Positions 9,425 through 63,387 of a DNA stretch of 64,000 nucleotides are shown here, piece after piece (position 1 is the stretch's first letter; each line of letters opens with the position of its first letter). The notes below the pieces were generated by a model, which did no database searches, had not been told where the DNA came from, and saw only the letters and a program-made list of their open reading frames with translations. Both the position numbers and the translations under genes were made by a program. The stretch spans positions 62,001-126,000 of the forward strand of contig CDROCS010002735.1 of the NCBI GenBank assembly GCA_977020255.1, read 5' to 3'. This stretch comes from Obrimoposthia wandeli. Taxonomy: Eukaryota.

Positions 9425-9452
9425 CATGCGTATAAATAATATTATGTTAAAT
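9425..9452. other. dif-like XerC/XerD recombination site
   Basis: CATGCGTATAA-ATAATA-TTATGTTAAAT: perfect 11-bp XerD arm, 6-bp core, XerC arm 8/11 identical to E. coli dif (22/28 overall); intergenic. Confidence 0.8.
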
Positions 9453-14463: not shown

Positions 14464-14497
14464 ATTAGGTTTATTGTCACTTACCCGAACGAAAATA
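14464..14497 (+). repeat. 34-bp direct repeat, left copy (just upstream of lysR start)
   Basis: ATTAGGTTTATTGTCACTTACCCGAACGAAAATA; 30/34 identical to 15416-15449. Confidence 0.85.
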
Positions 14498-15415: not shown

Positions 15416-15449
15416 ATTAGTTTTGTTGTCACTTACCCGATCGGAAATA
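15416..15449 (+). repeat. 34-bp direct repeat, right copy (just after lysR stop)
   Basis: ATTAGTTTTGTTGTCACTTACCCGATCGGAAATA. Confidence 0.85.
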
Positions 15450-15821
15450 ACACTTTTGTGAGATTTTACATTAGGAAGGATTAGGAAATTTCTGTAGAAG
15501 CTGAAATATTACATGTTCAATGATTTGGTGTATTTACTAGAGGGTTTAATATATGCAAATGAGAAAAAACCTTTAAGTTAGGTTGTTAATTTATCTTATT
15601 GAAATTTATATGTTATTTAATTTTTAATATCATTAAATCCACTAAAAATACGCCAATCTATTACATTGAATTTGATACTAAAAACCTGACTAACATTTTT
15701 ATATAATACCTCTGTACCATAGCGTTTCATCTATCAAAGTAACGATTCAATTCAGCTCGATTGAATAGGGCGCTAGTTATTAGTTCTCTCCTTATTTCTA
15801 CGTAATAAACTGTTTCTCCCA

Positions 15822-16226
15822 TTAGTACAGCTTATAATAAGTTGGATTGAATAAAGCCATATACTTTTTATCCAATACATCTTTGAAGCTGATACTAAGT
15901 TTTCGGTTGTCAGCAAGGAAGGTTTCAACCAATAAGTTTTCAAAACTGTGTATATTGAATAATGCATTTCTAATTGTGCGCATATATTTTAAAGATGAAA
16001 TAATTCCTGAATTCATCAGAATCCCTATATGATGAATTGGAACACTTAATAGCGCAGTTGCTTGCTCTGTATTGGCTTGAAAAGTGTCATGTGAGATTTC
16101 TCTATCAGTATTTCTAAGGCAAAAAGCTATCCAATTTTGATACTGTTGCTCAGGTAATTTTTTAAGTTGTGGGATAATTGGGAGAAGAACAGCATTGTTT
16201 ATTACATAGTGGTCAGTCTTTTTAGT
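15822..16226 (-). pseudogene. Gene remnant with an excisionase/MerR-like HTH pattern
   Basis: 134 open codons after an in-frame TAA (16227-16229), no ATG until 16016; segment NTEQATALLSVPIHHIGILMNSGII fits an AAxxLgV-turn-helix-G pattern. Confidence 0.35.
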
Positions 16227-16373
16227 TTAGATCCGATTACTAGCTGAAAACTTGCAAGGCATTCAAATTTAATGCACTTATTTTTTTAGCCTCATATGTA
16301 ATATTAGACTGAGCCACAGTCTTAAGAGTCGTCGTAAACTACAATAATAATTTAGAAGGTGCATAACAAGCTA

Positions 16374-16409
16374 TACTATGTCCAATACTCTTAAGTATTG
16401 GACATAGTA
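16374..16409. repeat. Perfect 16-bp inverted repeat with 4-nt centre, upstream of the recombinase
   Basis: TACTATGTCCAATACT-CTTA-AGTATTGGACATAGTA. Confidence 0.9.
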
Positions 16410-16453
16410 GTATATGTTGTTATACTGGGTTTTGCTTATAATTATGTGAATAT

Positions 16454-17734
16454 TTGGATTTTTATATGTTACAGATAACGCCTTTAATAAATACCTTTAC
16501 TGAAATTAGAAACCAGCGATCTTTGCTTAAACAGCAACAGCTTGCGACCGAATATCCTAGCGTGGCATCTTTTCTTAGTTCATTAAATGAATTACAGGAA
16601 ACTGCGCAAACTGAACTCATATTTGTCTTAGACTTTCTATATATTATGGGTCGAAAATCAGATGGTACGTTTATTCGGTTTCGCAATGAAATTGAACGTT
16701 GGTGTTTGTTTTGTTGGCAAGAGCGAAAAAAAGCTATTTTTAATGTTAACCGTTCAGACATTGAAGCTTATATTGAATTTGTTTGGAAACCCGATAAAGC
16801 TTGGATTGGACTTTCTGTACAGCAGCGCTTTAAATTAATATCTGGGAGCTTTCAAGCAAATCAGAAATGGCGTCCGTTTGTAGTTAAATTGCCAAAATCG
16901 ATGGTTAAGAAAAATCAAAACCACAACTTAAGCCCCGAGCAATATAGGCCTTCTCAAGAATCGTTAATTTCTACCTTCACAGCTATCAGCGTGCTTTATC
17001 AACACGCGCAAATGGAGGAAGTTTGTGATAAGAACTTTGTGCCAGTAGTAAAAAAGAGCTGTCCATATTTAGTTAAAGAGGTACAGCGCAAGACTCCGGA
17101 TACACTTAGTGAATTGCAATGGGAATACGTATTAGGCACGACCAAAGAAATGGCAGATGCAGATAGTCAGTATGAGCGTAATTTATTCATTATAGTGACA
17201 TTAAAATCTTTATATTTAAGGGTTTCTGAGTTGTCAGAACATGCAAAGTGGCGGCCTACCATGTCTGATTTTAGTAAAGATAATGATGATTTCTGGTATC
17301 TCACAGTGTTTGGTAAAGGCAATAAAATTCGTTCTGTTACCGTGCCACAAGCCTATTTAGAATATCTAAAACGTTACCGTACTTATCGACAGCTATCGGC
17401 TCTGCCCTCGCCTGATGAAGATTCTGCGATGTTAAATAAATTGCGCGGATCTGGAAATATGACCTCTCGTCAAGTACGCAGGATTGTAGAACAAAGCTTT
17501 GATTATGCGATAAAGGCTTTACAGAAAGATGGCTTTATTGAAGATGCTAATTATCTGATGGCCGCAACAACTCATTGGCTAAGGCATACTGGAGCAACTG
17601 AGGATGCAGGCTCTAGACCGCTCAAACATCTTGCCGATGAGTTGGGCCACGCATCATCAGAAACAACGGATAAAAACTATATACAAAGCAATATTAAGGA
17701 TAGAGCAAGAAGCGGCTTTAAAAGAAGTATTTAA
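16454..17734 (+). CDS. Tyrosine recombinase (site-specific integrase)
   Basis: Full catalytic set: R (YLRVSE), K (GKGNK), HWLRH, LGH, Y (DKNY); N-terminal core-binding region; ATG start probably 16466. Confidence 0.93.
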   Translation: MDFYMLQITPLINTFTEIRNQRSLLKQQQLATEYPSVASFLSSLNELQETAQTELIFVLDFLYIMGRKSDGTFIRFRNEIERWCLFCWQERKKAIFNVNRSDIEAYIEFVWKPDKAWIGLSVQQRFKLISGSFQANQKWRPFVVKLPKSMVKKNQNHNLSPEQYRPSQESLISTFTAISVLYQHAQMEEVCDKNFVPVVKKSCPYLVKEVQRKTPDTLSELQWEYVLGTTKEMADADSQYERNLFIIVTLKSLYLRVSELSEHAKWRPTMSDFSKDNDDFWYLTVFGKGNKIRSVTVPQAYLEYLKRYRTYRQLSALPSPDEDSAMLNKLRGSGNMTSRQVRRIVEQSFDYAIKALQKDGFIEDANYLMAATTHWLRHTGATEDAGSRPLKHLADELGHASSETTDKNYIQSNIKDRARSGFKRSI

Positions 17735-17832: not shown

Positions 17833-19737
17833 TTATTTCAGCTCATCAGAGGATACTACTCTTGCGCGGCCATTCGTTTTTGCTTGATATAACCGTTTAT
17901 CAGCGACTTCAAATAAAGCTTGCCAATCTCCACTTTCAATTTCACTTGAATGAGCGATGCCTAAACTCAAAGAGAGATGCTTAAGAGTGGATTTTTCATG
18001 TTTAATATCAAGTTTCTGGATAATTGACTGTATTCTATCGGCCACTAATTCAGCCTGAGTCATGGTGCTATTAACTAATAATACCAAAAACTCTTCCCCG
18101 CCATAGCGCACCGCTAAATCAGCATCATTGCGCAAGCTTTCTTTAATCGCAGTTGCAACTTTAGTAATGCATACATCACCTTCCGCATGGCCGTAGAAAT
18201 CGTTAAAGGCCTTAAAGTAATCTATGTCAGCCATAATTAATGCGTAATTTGACTCTATTTGCTGATCAATAAAAGGCTTTAGTTTTCTACGGTTATAAAG
18301 TCCTGTTAAAGTATCTGTTAATGATTCGTCTTTAACTTGTTCAAGTGTTTTAATTAATTGATGTTCTTTTTTAACATCAACAGTTATATCAATTAACAAA
18401 GCAAGTGTACTAGCTTTGTCATTCCAATCTATATCGGTAGCGAAAAAGCGGAAAAAGCATTGACCTATTTGCAATCTGTCTTTGTAGGTCATGGTTTTAA
18501 TAGCGATGAGGAGGTTTTGAGAAATAATGTCAGTATTGTTTATTGCATTTAGATCTAGCAGTTGCTGAGAATACTGATTGCTGTAAACAATTTTCTCTGC
18601 ACTGTAAATAATCACTGCTTGATTGGAGTTTTCAATGATCAGCATTAATTGCTTAGCGTTGGTTTTTATTTCGTTTTTTTGCTGTTCATTCTTAAGCATA
18701 TACTTAAGGATAGATTTTGCAATGATGCTAATTTCAGAGCCCCCTCGTGTTTCTTTTGTCAGCATTTTACGGTTCTCTTTAGTGCCGATACTTCTAGCTA
18801 GAACTATTAATCTTTTAGAGACGCTTTGGTGAAACAAATACATGAAGGCAATGGTAAAAATAGTGGTGAAGAGAACAATTGAGATTAATGCTTTAGTATA
18901 GTTTGATGAAATATTGTTTAGCTCTTGGGTGCCTTCCTTTACTAAGTTTTTAACAACATTAACTTTATCAAAAGAAATGGCGATAAGCTGTTCAATAATG
19001 ACGTTAGTTTGTGTTTCTAACACTGATAAATTGACCGAAATATCACCTTGCTCTTGAAGTACGGCAATAATCCCATCTTCGGGGTGATCAATGATTTCGA
19101 AAAAGCGCTTGTCGTTAATACCCATTATCCTTAATTGTTTAATTTTATTGATAATATTACTTCTGGCACGCTTAAATAAAAATGTGGTCGGGTAATCAGG
19201 GAGTGAGCGTGCTGATGTATAAAGCTGGTTAAGTTCACTTGTTTCACTCATTTGATGACTTTGTAATTTCATTAGCTTATTTATGTAAGCATCATCTAAT
19301 GCAATTATTTGTTTACGCAAGTTTAGTTTAGAATCAATAAATCTATCCGTTTCTAAGCTATAAGAATTAACAATAGGTAATAATTCTTTTGTCATCGCCA
19401 GCATTAGTTTACTGTATTTGTCCTTGGAAATATTATCAATAGCGAGTGTGATTTGATGTAATTCATTACTAAGCTCTTGCACAATAACCCTGTTTTCGGC
19501 GCTACTTTTGACGTGAGGAATTGCATCCATTTTTCTAAGCACGTTCTTGATTGCTAAATGTAAATTTGATGATTTTGATAATTCTGGAACCTGTTTTTCA
19601 GAGACAACAAGAGATAGGTAACTAAATTTATCCATCATCCAAAATGATAATGCCGTAATCATAAAAAGCGCGATTAGAATAACCAGCATACCGGCATTAA
19701 TTCTAACGGATATGCTAGCTTTCCAATTAGTTCTCAT
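17833..19737 (-). CDS. Membrane-bound diguanylate cyclase (TM-periplasmic-TM-HAMP-like-PAS-like-GGDEF)
   Basis: DTLTGLYNRR, DIDYFK..NDFYGH..GD and RYGGEEF motifs; two hydrophobic TM segments. Confidence 0.92.
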   Translation of the reverse strand: MRTNWKASISVRINAGMLVILIALFMITALSFWMMDKFSYLSLVVSEKQVPELSKSSNLHLAIKNVLRKMDAIPHVKSSAENRVIVQELSNELHQITLAIDNISKDKYSKLMLAMTKELLPIVNSYSLETDRFIDSKLNLRKQIIALDDAYINKLMKLQSHQMSETSELNQLYTSARSLPDYPTTFLFKRARSNIINKIKQLRIMGINDKRFFEIIDHPEDGIIAVLQEQGDISVNLSVLETQTNVIIEQLIAISFDKVNVVKNLVKEGTQELNNISSNYTKALISIVLFTTIFTIAFMYLFHQSVSKRLIVLARSIGTKENRKMLTKETRGGSEISIIAKSILKYMLKNEQQKNEIKTNAKQLMLIIENSNQAVIIYSAEKIVYSNQYSQQLLDLNAINNTDIISQNLLIAIKTMTYKDRLQIGQCFFRFFATDIDWNDKASTLALLIDITVDVKKEHQLIKTLEQVKDESLTDTLTGLYNRRKLKPFIDQQIESNYALIMADIDYFKAFNDFYGHAEGDVCITKVATAIKESLRNDADLAVRYGGEEFLVLLVNSTMTQAELVADRIQSIIQKLDIKHEKSTLKHLSLSLGIAHSSEIESGDWQALFEVADKRLYQAKTNGRARVVSSDELK

Positions 19738-21295
19738 CGTTTGCCTGATCTACCATTCTATTCATAGCAGGCTTTCGAATAGTTTGATGTGTTGAAAAAT
19801 AATCGGAAACAATATTCCAAATTCTACCTTTGTTAAATAAATTATTAATTGGCTTCTTGTTTTTAAGCATATAGTAGTCGTCTCCTCCTTTTAAAAAATA
19901 GTCTTGGAGAGCCATTGTATAAATTTTGTTTTCCACCACCGCTTTGCCTGCAATTTTTAGGGATTTTAATCGACTACCTACAGGTACTGAGGAGTCGTAC
20001 ACAGCCTTCATACCAGAAATATTGAGAAACCTGCCATCAATATGCTCTATTCTACTGACTGAATTTTCCATCATTTGTAGCAACTCTGTTCCAGATATTT
20101 CTATTACGACATAAAAGCCGCCGAAAGGAAATTCTCGTTGAATGTCGCCACGGGTAAATTTATACCCCACAGGATAAATAGCAGAGTTGCGTATTGATCC
20201 GCTGTTCAAAATGGCGATTTCTGTCTTTGCATGTGCATGTAGTGCATCTACAAATACGTTTGCCAATGCGGTTTCTCTCGTTCTGATTTGGTTTTTTTCT
20301 GTCGTGAACTTATCTGCAGCCGTAGCTATTTCTTCGTTGTACAAACTACCTAAGCGTAATTGATACTTTTTAATGAAATTAACTATTTCAGCATTAGCAG
20401 GATATTCATTAAGCTGCTCAATGCGCGCAGATATTTTCTGCGCTGCACTATAATCTATATCAACGACAACAGCATCACCGTCTTGGCCACCACCTAGTAC
20501 AATGGTTGTTTCGTTTTTGGTGATAATTTCATCCTTACCGTCAATAGCAACCAGTATTAAGTCAAATCTGTATTTATCCGCTATTGCTATCGCCGCTTCC
20601 TTTTTTAGATCGGTCATCAGAATTTTCATATCGGATGTTGCTTGCGCTGTAACAATTTTTTTTAAAACACTATCAAGATTTTCGATTTTAGCAAACTTTG
20701 GAGCATAAGTTATTAACGTTCTAGGACTAATGATAGAGGCTACTGAAATTGATTTGCCTTCAATATTGAATTGATAATCGGAGAATAAACCCTCGATTGT
20801 TGTATTGTTACGTGCATCCGTCATATTGCTACTAACGATTGGAAACTGAGCATCATGTGCCCTTAATGATAGAACATCTACATCATAACTAAGCTCTCTT
20901 TTCCCGACCGAATACAGAGACACATCCATGATATTGGCTAAGGATATAATATTACGTGCTTTATCAAACAGCGATATAGCGCTTGGTGAGAAACTATCTC
21001 CACCGTGTAAAAACAAAGTGTTTTTATTTTGATTAGCTCTTATCTTTTCTAGCAAAGAGCCTAATTGTGGAAAATGCGCCACTTCTTTGTCTAGCAAAAT
21101 ATCTGGCTGGTTTGAGGTATACACAATTGTCGTATTGGCAGCTAATGAGCATGAAAAAAGAGAAATCATAACAATGTTAACTATTTTAATGCTGTCTTTA
21201 CTATATTGTCGGCTCAATGCCGTTAGTTTTTCAATAATCAAGTTGGACTCCTGCATTGTTATCAATATAGCATCAGTTGAAGGTATGTCTAGCAA
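19727..21295 (-). CDS. 5'-nucleotidase-fold periplasmic protein with degenerate metallophosphoesterase site
   Basis: HGGDS, NSGSIR, FPFGG, GRFLNISG and GGDDY motifs; signal-like ISLFSCSLAA; GNHE replaced by GKRE; true start is probably downstream of 21295. Confidence 0.85.
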   Translation of the reverse strand: MLDIPSTDAILITMQESNLIIEKLTALSRQYSKDSIKIVNIVMISLFSCSLAANTTIVYTSNQPDILLDKEVAHFPQLGSLLEKIRANQNKNTLFLHGGDSFSPSAISLFDKARNIISLANIMDVSLYSVGKRELSYDVDVLSLRAHDAQFPIVSSNMTDARNNTTIEGLFSDYQFNIEGKSISVASIISPRTLITYAPKFAKIENLDSVLKKIVTAQATSDMKILMTDLKKEAAIAIADKYRFDLILVAIDGKDEIITKNETTIVLGGGQDGDAVVVDIDYSAAQKISARIEQLNEYPANAEIVNFIKKYQLRLGSLYNEEIATAADKFTTEKNQIRTRETALANVFVDALHAHAKTEIAILNSGSIRNSAIYPVGYKFTRGDIQREFPFGGFYVVIEISGTELLQMMENSVSRIEHIDGRFLNISGMKAVYDSSVPVGSRLKSLKIAGKAVVENKIYTMALQDYFLKGGDDYYMLKNKKPINNLFNKGRIWNIVSDYFSTHQTIRKPAMNRMVDQANDEN

Positions 21296-61962: not shown

Positions 61963-63387
61963 ATGAACGAAGAAAGAGAACAATTTGGATCGCGGTTAGG
62001 TTTTATTCTAGCCGCTGCAGGTAGTGCAGTTGGTATTGGTAATTTAGTTGGATTTCCCGTTAATGCTGCTAAAAATGGCGGTGGCGCATTCTTAGTTGTG
62101 TACGCTTTATTTGTTATCGCCCTTTGCTTACCGGTAATGATTGCTGAGTTAGCTATGGGGCGCAGCACCCAAAAAGGCCCTGTGGGGGCATTCAATCAAT
62201 TAGCAAAACGCAATATCATTTGGCGCGTAGCAGGCTTCTTGGGCATGCTAACACCCTTTATGATTGCCGTTTTTTACACCGTGATTAGTGTGTGGATTTT
62301 AGGCTATCTTTTCATGGCTGCTACTGGTGATTTAGCCTTTCTAGCAGCCGATGGCACTTTTGGTAGTTATATCAGCAGCAGTCATATTTTTTCAGCGATG
62401 TTCGGTGTAATAGTAATTATCTACTTAATTTTAAAAGTAGGTGTACAAGATGGTATTGAGAAAATCTCTAAAATACTAATGCCCGCATTATTCTTCATGT
62501 TGATCGGCTTAGTCATTTTCGTTTTGACGCTAGATAACGCTGCAGCGGGGATTGAATTTTACCTCGTGCCTGATTTCTCAAAGATTACTGCTTCAGTCAT
62601 CAACGGTGCGCTATCACAAGCTTTCTTCTCACTCTCTTTGGGTATGGGGATATTAGTCACTTACGGCTCGTATCTAACACGTCGCACTAATATAGTCGGT
62701 TCTGCGAAGATGATTGCTCTGGCGGATACCGCTGTTGCTTTTATTGCCGGCTTAATGGTGATGCCAGCAATTTTCTCTTTTAATCCCGAAGTTGACCCAA
62801 ATGAGCTAAGTAACTCTTCGGTCGGGTTAATTTTTGTTTTGCTACCTAAAATATTTCTGGCGCTACAAAGTTCAATAGGCTTTATCGGTGCTAGTTCTGT
62901 CGCGACCTTATTCTTCTTATTAGTCTTTTTTGCGGCGATCACTTCACTGGTCTCTATCATTGAAGTACCAGTAGCCTACTTGATGGATGAAAAGCAACAA
63001 AGTCGTAAAAAGGCGCTATCCACTATTGGTATTTTTGGTGGATCGCTAATGGTATTAGTCAGTTTATCAATGGGCATGGTTAGCTTTTTAAGTGAAATGG
63101 TCAGCTACGGCAGTGGCGTTAAATCACTGTTTGATATCATCGTCGATATTTTCTACGATACCATTTTGCCATTAAACGGCTTACTGCTCTGTTTATTCGT
63201 TAGCTATCGTTGGAAGAAGCAAGCATTCAACCAAGAGCTGAGTATCGGAAATGAAGGTTTTGAGGGCTCACTAATGCAAAAATATCTCAATCTTTCACTC
63301 GGTACATTTATCCCTGTGGTGTTGTTGCTTATTTTCTTAAATACGCTTGCGGATAAATTCTTTGCATATTCACTGTTTGGGTTTTAA
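61963..63387 (+). CDS. Sodium-dependent transporter (NSS/SNF family)
   Basis: LAAAGSAVGIGNL..FP, NGGGAF, AFFSLSLG and AAITS..SIIE motifs. Confidence 0.93.
   Translation: MNEEREQFGSRLGFILAAAGSAVGIGNLVGFPVNAAKNGGGAFLVVYALFVIALCLPVMIAELAMGRSTQKGPVGAFNQLAKRNIIWRVAGFLGMLTPFMIAVFYTVISVWILGYLFMAATGDLAFLAADGTFGSYISSSHIFSAMFGVIVIIYLILKVGVQDGIEKISKILMPALFFMLIGLVIFVLTLDNAAAGIEFYLVPDFSKITASVINGALSQAFFSLSLGMGILVTYGSYLTRRTNIVGSAKMIALADTAVAFIAGLMVMPAIFSFNPEVDPNELSNSSVGLIFVLLPKIFLALQSSIGFIGASSVATLFFLLVFFAAITSLVSIIEVPVAYLMDEKQQSRKKALSTIGIFGGSLMVLVSLSMGMVSFLSEMVSYGSGVKSLFDIIVDIFYDTILPLNGLLLCLFVSYRWKKQAFNQELSIGNEGFEGSLMQKYLNLSLGTFIPVVLLLIFLNTLADKFFAYSLFGF

Follow-up and report, generated by a model that had tools for sequence, protein, structure and literature searches.

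Among the single-recombinase Xer systems described so far, XerL/dif of the Legionellales is the closest to the locus reported here. In Legionella, XerL (Lpg1867) is required for recombination at a terminus-located dif site of about 30 bp and is enough for it even in yeast; the arms of this site are uninterrupted inverted repeats of 10–12 bp (PMC9765430). Loss of XerL leads to filamentation, the Legionellales are without XerCD, and the mobile element LME-1 exploits XerL/dif in Legionella (PMC9765430). XerL/dif was presented as replacing XerCD/dif, and XerL has been regarded as restricted to the Legionellales (Nicholson, Deecker and Ensminger, mBio 2022, PMC9765430); our literature search found the name only in that paper and in one paper citing it. 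Here, we describe a xerL-like tyrosine recombinase gene preceded by a perfect palindromic site in a stretch of 64,000 nucleotides, referred to as the window (positions 62,001–126,000 of contig CDROCS010002735.1, assembly GCA_977020255.1, filed under Obrimoposthia wandeli). The window belongs to a bacterial contig (G000:C2735) of a 1.35-Gb mixed assembly which holds many bacteria; among public genomes, those of Osedax symbionts, Nitrincola and 'Oceanospirillaceae' are closest to it. The gene and the palindrome are proposed to form a XerL-type recombinase/site module that lies beside an XerCD-type dif and acts as a second dimer-resolution system, a reading to which we give a probability of roughly 0.6.

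The locus shares several properties with XerL/dif of the Legionellales. The proteins are homologous and of similar length, and the site of about 30 bp combines uninterrupted palindromic arms with a short centre and lies in the terminus region. Both systems also have a plasmid partner, as the Coxiella gene resides on a plasmid and a copy of the present site is found on a plasmid-like contig. However, an XerCD-type dif lies a few kb away from the present module whereas the Legionellales have neither XerCD nor its dif. The gene adjoins the site and shares a promoter region with it, while xerL and dif of L. pneumophila are more than 400 kb apart. Furthermore, the arms are longer (13–16 nt and more), and the protein belongs, together with plasmid and chromid genes, to a sister subclade.

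Other site-specific recombination systems are comparable in part. XerS/difSL of streptococci and lactococci also places a single recombinase beside a terminus site and is thought to have been acquired as one module. However, the arms of difSL are only partly symmetric, XerS replaces XerCD instead of coexisting with it, and the window protein reaches 37.5 bits against an NCBIfam XerS cut-off of 267. XerH/difH of Helicobacter and Campylobacter and archaeal XerA/dif rely on single 'simple' tyrosine recombinases with folds near to that of the window protein, but these enzymes are shorter (about 280–360 amino acids) and serve as the sole Xer system of their hosts, and a sequence search of solved structures with the window protein gave no match. 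Cre/loxP of the phage-plasmid P1 offers the nearest solved fold, symmetric arms around an asymmetric centre, a site beside its gene, and a role in replicon dimer resolution such as is proposed here. Yet Cre is 10–12% identical in sequence and is without some 100 extra N-terminal residues of the window protein, and loxP has 13-bp arms and an 8-bp spacer. XerCD acting at cer/psi, where a recombinase-less replicon carries a copy of the host system's site, has its counterpart in the plasmid-like contig, and the Xer-exploiting CTXphi and LME-1 have theirs in filamentous prophages at dif beside relatives of the gene; these are, however, uses of a host system by other DNA and not the system itself. 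XerL/dif and single-recombinase Xer systems such as XerS/difSL are thus already known, while the occurrence outside the Legionellales, the compact gene–site–promoter module, the coexistence with an XerCD-type dif, and the recurrent pairing of both sites are new.

A XerL-family recombinase and its palindromic site

A sequence-only reading of the window had pointed to an intact R-K-HxxR-H-Y recombinase of over 420 amino acids and had suggested a single-recombinase system. Both ideas hold. The protein has 422 residues (Table 1), and R252, K287, H370-x-x-R373, H395, and Y405 do not vary among 37 family members. The system is right in kind, as homology places the protein in the XerL family, whose members from Legionella and Coxiella are both needed and enough for recombination at a palindromic dif (PMC9765430). 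By BLASTP, the recombinase is 40% identical over 362 amino acids (E 9e-89) to CBUA0010 of the Coxiella burnetii plasmid pQpH1, a gene first located by tblastn against plasmids, and it is 38% identical to a homolog of Legionella adelaidensis. CBUA0010 is XerLCb of PMC9765430, as the sequence start given in Table S3 of that paper (MEPLMKTVPLALFD) equals the translation from L077:2362 and the catalytic tyrosine at 389 also fits. On this homology, the recombinase is a member of the XerL family, which was reported before as restricted to the Legionellales. The L. adelaidensis sequence (L079, 'plasmid 9', 451 kb) has a trigger factor gene beside the XerL homolog and, though filed as a plasmid, looks like a chromosome piece.

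Table 1. Coordinates of the recombinase gene, its site and linked elements in the window
Feature	Position	Strand	Remarks
36-bp palindrome, proposed XerL-type core recombination site	16374..16409	.	two 16-nt arms, asymmetric 4-nt centre CTTA
Promoter-like element of the recombinase gene	16399..16426	+	promoter scan, 10 of 12 matches
xerL-like tyrosine recombinase gene	16466..17734	+	422 amino acids plus stop; intact
dif-like XerCD-type site	9425..9452	+	linked neighbour, not part of the module proper

General-purpose annotation says little about this protein. Pfam sees just the generic catalytic domain PF00589 (1.2e-10), Pfam and PHROGs label it 'phage integrase', and among the curated NCBIfam equivalogs it stays below the cut-off for XerC (59.6 of 335 bits) and XerD (43.6 of 330) as it does for XerS. 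The AlphaFold2 model (predicted local distance difference test score 82.5) is that of a two-domain 'simple' tyrosine recombinase of the Cre/Xer type, in which the arm-binding N-terminal domain is absent; closest to it among solved folds are Cre, XerH, IntI, and XerA (Foldseek; Cre E 2e-5). Between the window and G001, the recombinase shows 84% identity, compared with 62% for the adjoining GGDEF and 5'-nucleotidase-like proteins, and this higher conservation suggests purifying selection on the recombinase. Although the reading frame is open from TTG 16454, orthologs begin at ATG 16466 (MLQITPLINTF; ortholog alignment), and the upstream TTG is probably not the start codon. The distance of 45 bp between palindrome and gene, as first stated, therefore applies to the TTG, whereas from the start of the orthologs it amounts to 57 bp.

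The palindrome was recovered by a repeat search of the window as two arms of 16 nt (16374–16389 and 16394–16409), 100% complementary and separated by 4 nt, with the sequence TACTATGTCCAATACT CTTA AGTATTGGACATAGTA. This 16+4+16 layout is equivalent to the 15+6+15 or 14+8+14 division under which the perfect 36-bp inverted repeat had originally been read. The arms continue outwards as an imperfect repeat (16363–16378 and 16408–16423, 88%), and the conserved part is a core of 30 nt (16377–16406). Less than 1e-3 such palindromes are expected by chance per window, according to an arithmetic estimate from a match probability of about 0.26 per position raised to the power of 16, times 64 kb, times about 9 spacer lengths.

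The presence of the palindrome upstream of orthologs had been set beforehand as a test, and the palindrome proved to be conserved and to co-vary with the protein. The nearest orthologs (tier 1, 80–97% identity) come from three other contigs of the assembly and eight public genomes. Their 30-nt core, TATGTCCAATACT-CTTA-AGTATTGGACATA, is identical with the sole exception of one arm substitution in G001, while the sequence around the core cannot be aligned. The outer arm extensions vary from genome to genome yet stay complementary, so that the arms reach up to 21 nt. One tier-1 ortholog (97% identity) is distributed over the ends of two contigs, the two parts sharing 35 residues (L014/L016, metagenome-assembled genome 9NakV-11 = G129), probably through an assembly break from strain mixture.

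More distant relatives have sites of the same build with other letters. Relatives of about 42% identity carry AATTACCAGTAGT-AGAC-ACTACTGGTAATT as a single primary site in each of the 23 genomes (in one of them with the centre AGGC), and those of about 30% identity carry (A/G)TGCCGATAA-N6-TTATCGGCA(T/C). Pseudoalteromonas replicons of 0.8 Mb (chromosome II) have AAAGTCCAATACT-AGAC-AGTATCGGACTTT, an Alteromonas plasmid has CCCTATGTCTAATACT-ATTC-AGTATTAGACATAGGG, and a Teredinibacter plasmid has a site with 22-nt arms around GTCT. Across all these relatives, the palindrome lies 40–170 bp 5' of the gene, and in the plasmid and chromid relatives 40–70 bp. Next to xerLCb on pQpH1, no convincing palindrome was found. 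The orientation of the centre relative to the gene is constant in all but one tier-1 site and in 22 of the 23 sites of the 42% group. Moreover, there is one primary site per genome, against about 0.002 chance matches per genome at the tolerance used (our own estimate). Taken on this co-variation, the palindrome is the cognate site of the recombinase.

The palindrome also overlaps the promoter region of the gene. A −35 box (TGGACA) lies within the right arm and is followed, after a 16-nt spacer, by a TG-extended −10 box (TATACT). The −10 box stands exactly 14 nt from the arm end in nine of ten tier-1 orthologs, although the spacer sequence is variable. Since the −35 box is inside the right arm, a bound recombinase should repress its own gene, and the palindrome probably doubles as an operator. 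An autoregulatory operator had been offered as an alternative to a recombination site; it is probably true as well, and not instead.

Sites standing apart from the gene are informative in this respect. In G003, a chemoreceptor gene and a glycogen operon stand between the gene and a perfect site 15 kb away. The distance is 10 kb in G045 and 15 kb in G030, where the site is 0.6 kb from dif; in two draft genomes, the site is on a contig other than that of the gene. Beside the G003 gene, there is a weak remnant resembling the right arm (14 of 19 positions), and no half-site remnants are present beside the genes that lost their site in G030 and G045. Furthermore, secondary sites with conserved arms and differing centres occur with no family gene adjoining. 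In G002 and G090, the secondary site has the centre GTGA, kept between both species; in G003 it has TAAC; and G081 has two extra sites, both with GGAG. Identical arms with different centres are a classic way in which tyrosine-recombinase sites avoid cross-reaction. The perfect sites kept far from the gene and the gene-less secondary sites suggest that the palindrome is more than an operator.

A further secondary site, ATGTCCAATACC-CAAC-AGTATCGGACTT, belongs to a locus at 122036–122110 (L067:2537–2610) of G000:C4036, a plasmid-like contig of 135 kb on which KfrA and HigBA genes are found. This palindrome is 17 bp from a dif-like site, CTACGCATAA GATTTA TTATGTTAAAT. The whole assembly holds four family genes only, none of them on this contig. 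The contig looks like a replicon borrowing two host recombinase systems, its paired sites forming a composite multimer-resolution locus in the manner of cer plasmids.

Several other interpretations of the palindrome were rejected. A protelomerase (hairpin-telomere) reading does not fit, as CTTA is not self-complementary, the motif is HxxR and not YxxR, and the flanks are not palindromic. The palindrome was listed as terminator-like in a scan, but it is AT-rich, has no T-run, and is conserved as a sequence rather than only as a stem. An integron-like cassette was considered because of 34-bp direct repeats (14464–14497 and 15416–15449, 88% identical) which bracket a lysR gene between dif and the XerL-type site; the repeats are unrelated in sequence to the palindrome. 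A lysR gene is also found 5' of the ortholog in L014. The palindrome is preceded by about 900 bp of AT-rich DNA (15450–16370) with no convincing open reading frame, and the 0.8 kb between dif and site in the 42% group is likewise free of reading frames (L031:524–1350).

Linkage to dif and distribution of the family

The locus had been described as terminus-linked and about 7 kb from dif, and both statements were borne out. The dif-like site, ATCATGCGTATAA ATAATA TTATGTTAAAT, consists of an XerC-arm-like part, CATGCGTATAA, and the canonical XerD arm, TTATGTTAAAT. It is the sole window match to ATAA-N6-TTATGTTAAAT, 0.04 being expected, and lies 6.9 kb from the palindrome. Cumulative GC skew has its maximum at about 30 kb of the window, and this turnover places the replication terminus within the window. 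A search of the whole 1.35-Gb assembly with the dif pattern was swamped by chance matches in AT-rich non-bacterial contigs, where controls exceeded the signal.

The dif core ATAA-N6-TTATGTTAAAT was also examined at the level of single genomes, namely the 23 long-contig genomes of the bacterial family of G001 that carry the gene. The gene is 0.1–95 kb from the best dif match in all 23, mostly less than 10 kb and in many cases about 1 kb or less, and orthologs are thus placed non-randomly relative to dif, as had been anticipated. By our own figures, a random position in a 4–6-Mb genome falls within 95 kb of dif with a probability of about 0.04 and within 1 kb with about 4e-4. The nearest match is exact in 22 genomes; that of G012 has one mismatch in the XerD arm and is hence uncertain. 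In the group of about 42% identity, the site is 0.63 kb from dif in G030, 0.78 in G132, 0.84 in G133, 0.85 in G019, 1.04 in G125, 1.06 in G106, and 6.7 in G044. In the group of about 30% identity, where dif is always 3' of the gene, the distance is 0.12 kb in G109, 0.16 in G023, 0.18 in G051, 0.23 in G080, 2.6 in G049, 4.1 in G120, 4.6 in G009, 5.2 in G007, and 7.9 in G039, and it is largest in G151 (18 kb), G112 (26), G149 (48), and G034 (95). Within the window's own group, the 6.9 kb of the window compares with about 16 kb in G012, 32 in G002, and 89 in G001. Additionally, a dif-like site lies about 0.5 kb from the palindrome on contig G000:C3321 and about 0.7 kb from it on two Pseudoalteromonas 0.8-Mb replicons.

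Some of these termini carry further marks. In Pseudoalteromonas sp. CF6-2 (826-kb replicon), phage-type genes, including a replication endonuclease and DUF3693, abut the dif-like site (L084:1–1300), which points to integration of an element at the second chromosome's dif. Two dif-type sites 12 kb apart stand next to the XerL-like gene in G106 (C1:2747695 and 2759605), and in G420 two exact, inverted dif sites 29 kb apart (C1:158088 and 187405) enclose it. Such pairs may represent integrated Xer-exploiting elements or a rearranged terminus.

Coexistence with XerCD rests on the dif-like site of the window together with the Xer genes of its relatives. Besides the XerL-like gene, G019, G133, and G109 have XerD (382–386 bits, above the cut-off) and XerC, the two scoring above or near their cut-offs. 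Genomes of the window's clade have one XerD-like gene of 241–281 bits (below the cut-off) and one weak Xer-like gene of 124–153 bits. In G012 and G005, which have a perfect site and the XerL-like gene, no XerC/XerD-type gene was found at E 1e-15; these may be incomplete assemblies or may have lost XerCD, and they are a lead only.

Quick maximum-likelihood trees recover the family as monophyletic against XerC/XerD, with a Shimodaira–Hasegawa-like approximate likelihood ratio of 100, and divide it into three subclades: Legionellales XerL, the 30% group, and a subclade containing the window's group. The window's group is sister to the Pseudoalteromonas chromosome II genes (support 99); further out in the same subclade are Alteromonas and P. 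aeruginosa plasmid genes, and then a Teredinibacter plasmid gene and the 42% group. The three groups from one bacterial family are not sisters and thus do not form a single vertical lineage; chromosomes have probably acquired the module on several occasions, always next to dif. The recombinase is single-copy per genome, and 76 of the 151 genomes sampled from the family of G001 have it. In the wider class, 108 of 401 sampled genomes carry a family member, and most strong matches of that sample are in small genomes without a canonical dif, resembling the state of the Legionellales.

The gene of the 30% group also marks the end of about 55 predicted proviruses of 8–12 kb in IMG/VR (L095–L146). 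In L096, the order is palindrome (GCCGATAA-CCCCAT-TTATCGGC), gene, hybrid dif (GCGCATAA TGCCGTG TTTAGTTAAAT), and Zot-like inovirus genes. These are Xer-exploiting filamentous phages at the neighbouring dif, for which the recombinase has been mistaken as their integrase, and the phages probably end in fact at the hybrid dif that separates them from the gene.

The neighbours of the recombinase in the window are ordinary (FadL-type porin, ATP-binding cassette/FecCD transporter, LysR, GGDEF, 5'-nucleotidase-like, AIM24, and GFA proteins), and annotation found no phage, transposon, or conjugation genes accompanying it, as had been noted from the sequence. The GGDEF and 5'-nucleotidase-like pair (17833–21295) adjoins the recombinase in relatives as well (L011, L012, L015, L016). 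In G001 and G002, the pair stands on the other side of the recombinase with its relative orientation reversed, as if the site–gene module had been inverted in place; no second site 3' of the gene was found which could explain this order.

Proposed role and competing explanations

The proposed mechanism follows that of simple tyrosine recombinases. The palindrome would offer one recombinase-binding arm on either side of a short, asymmetric crossover region; two monomers would bind each site and two sites would synapse. Cleavage and strand exchange over the central 6–8 bp would then make recombination directional and confine it to sites that share a centre. As each chromosome has one primary site, located in the terminus region, the enzyme would be expected to act on the two copies present in a chromosome dimer. 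Occupancy of the site would at the same time repress the recombinase gene. The module would be of a plasmid or chromid kind and probably reached the chromosome via integration at dif, more than once in this bacterial family.

Some observations speak against a second dimer-resolution system. Other genomes checked keep XerC/XerD or Xer-like genes and a dif-like site, so that such a system would be without obvious necessity. Adjacency to dif of less than 1 kb is tighter than a terminus function needs and could merely record integration at dif. In G002, the 4-nt centre reads TAAG, flipped with respect to the gene, and orientation relative to dif varies in the 42% group. Short contigs assembled from public reads (Logan) break at the palindrome and give no joints or variants at the site. 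Besides, the window subclade is sister to the Legionellales XerL clade and outside it, the quick trees leaving the deep branching order unsettled; function is thus transferred across about 40% identity, and the likeness to the published Legionella site is one of description, not of letters. As for the G002 site itself (C1:2591155–2591182; L015/L018), both flanks match G001, and since its arms form a perfect palindrome, a flipped centre equals an inversion of the whole site.

The main rival holds that the module is a hitchhiker, that is, a plasmid multimer-resolution cassette which entered when XerCD integrated a plasmid or integrative element at dif and has no role for chromosome dimers, although it is possibly active. 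The close relatives on plasmids and chromids with the same layout of gene and upstream palindrome are what this idea expects, and so are the plasmid-like contig with its palindrome 17 bp from a dif-like site, the three non-sister groups each having its own geometry relative to dif, and the frequent adjacency below 1 kb. We nevertheless consider it unlikely. The recombinase is better conserved than its neighbours (84% vs 62%), single-copy, and kept in half of the sampled family genomes; the site is perfect even where the gene is elsewhere, and in G030 it has remained beside dif rather than the gene. This selection exceeds what a passive remnant should show. Another possibility is that the palindrome is a docking site for circular elements with a matching site, the recombinase serving as a host-encoded integrase, either for them or for gene capture. 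LME-1 exploits XerL/dif in Legionella in such a way, secondary sites do exist on the plasmid-like contig and elsewhere (including the two GGAG sites of G081), and in G003 a 15-kb block stands between a perfect site and the gene with its arm-like remnant. However, the secondary centres differ from the primary one, which should bar recombination with it, the genes of the G003 block are ordinary ones for chemotaxis and glycogen, and the remnant, besides being weak, has no equivalent in G030 and G045. In addition, the filamentous prophages beside relatives are bounded by dif-like sites and not by the palindrome. Support for gene capture is weak, and docking as a whole appears quite improbable.

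It is very unlikely that the palindrome is merely an operator for self-repression, with an enzyme that recombines other DNA or nothing. The −35 box inside the right arm, the conserved −10 box at a fixed distance, and the location 5' of the gene in most genomes would all be accommodated, but perfect sites that lie 10–15 kb away from it or on separate contigs would not, nor would gene-less secondary sites with conserved arms and different centres. Invariant catalytic residues and the nearly fixed orientation of the asymmetric centre also disagree with a mere operator, and tested homologs recombine at sites of the same build. Least credible of all is the view that the gene encodes a prophage or genomic-island integrase and that the palindrome is an attL or attR end. 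The 'phage integrase' label of Pfam and PHROGs and the position of relatives at the ends of predicted proviruses in IMG/VR are what would suggest it. Against this, no phage or island genes surround the gene, there is one site per genome, the arm-binding domain is missing, and in the proviruses a hybrid dif parts the gene from the Zot-like phage genes, which puts the gene outside the phage.

Significance for the XerL family and the terminus

The XerL family is much wider than assumed, as it extends to marine plasmids, chromids, and chromosomes of an Oceanospirillales family that includes bone-worm (Osedax) symbionts. The XerL-like module travels as a compact unit of gene and site and is repeatedly placed from about 1 kb to tens of kb from a classical dif, its host genomes having retained XerCD. 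The 'phage integrase' annotation pulls these genes into provirus predictions and leads to misplaced prophage borders. Furthermore, the short, directional, and self-contained sites with several natural specificities are possible tools for genome engineering of the Cre/lox type.

A broader scenario can be drawn, which we hold to be tentative and on balance doubtful. Many marine gammaproteobacteria and the second chromosome of Pseudoalteromonas would have two independent dimer-resolution systems at the terminus, XerCD/dif and a XerL-type recombinase with its palindrome, the latter having been repeatedly acquired from plasmids through integration at dif, and the dual state would be an intermediate on the way to the XerL-only Legionellales. 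Replacement of XerCD may have recurred in G012 and G005. A second system could keep dimer resolution going when dif is occupied or altered by Xer-exploiting phages. The module thus raises the questions of whether both systems are redundant, whether FtsK controls both, and whether the Legionellales lost XerCD after a dual stage.

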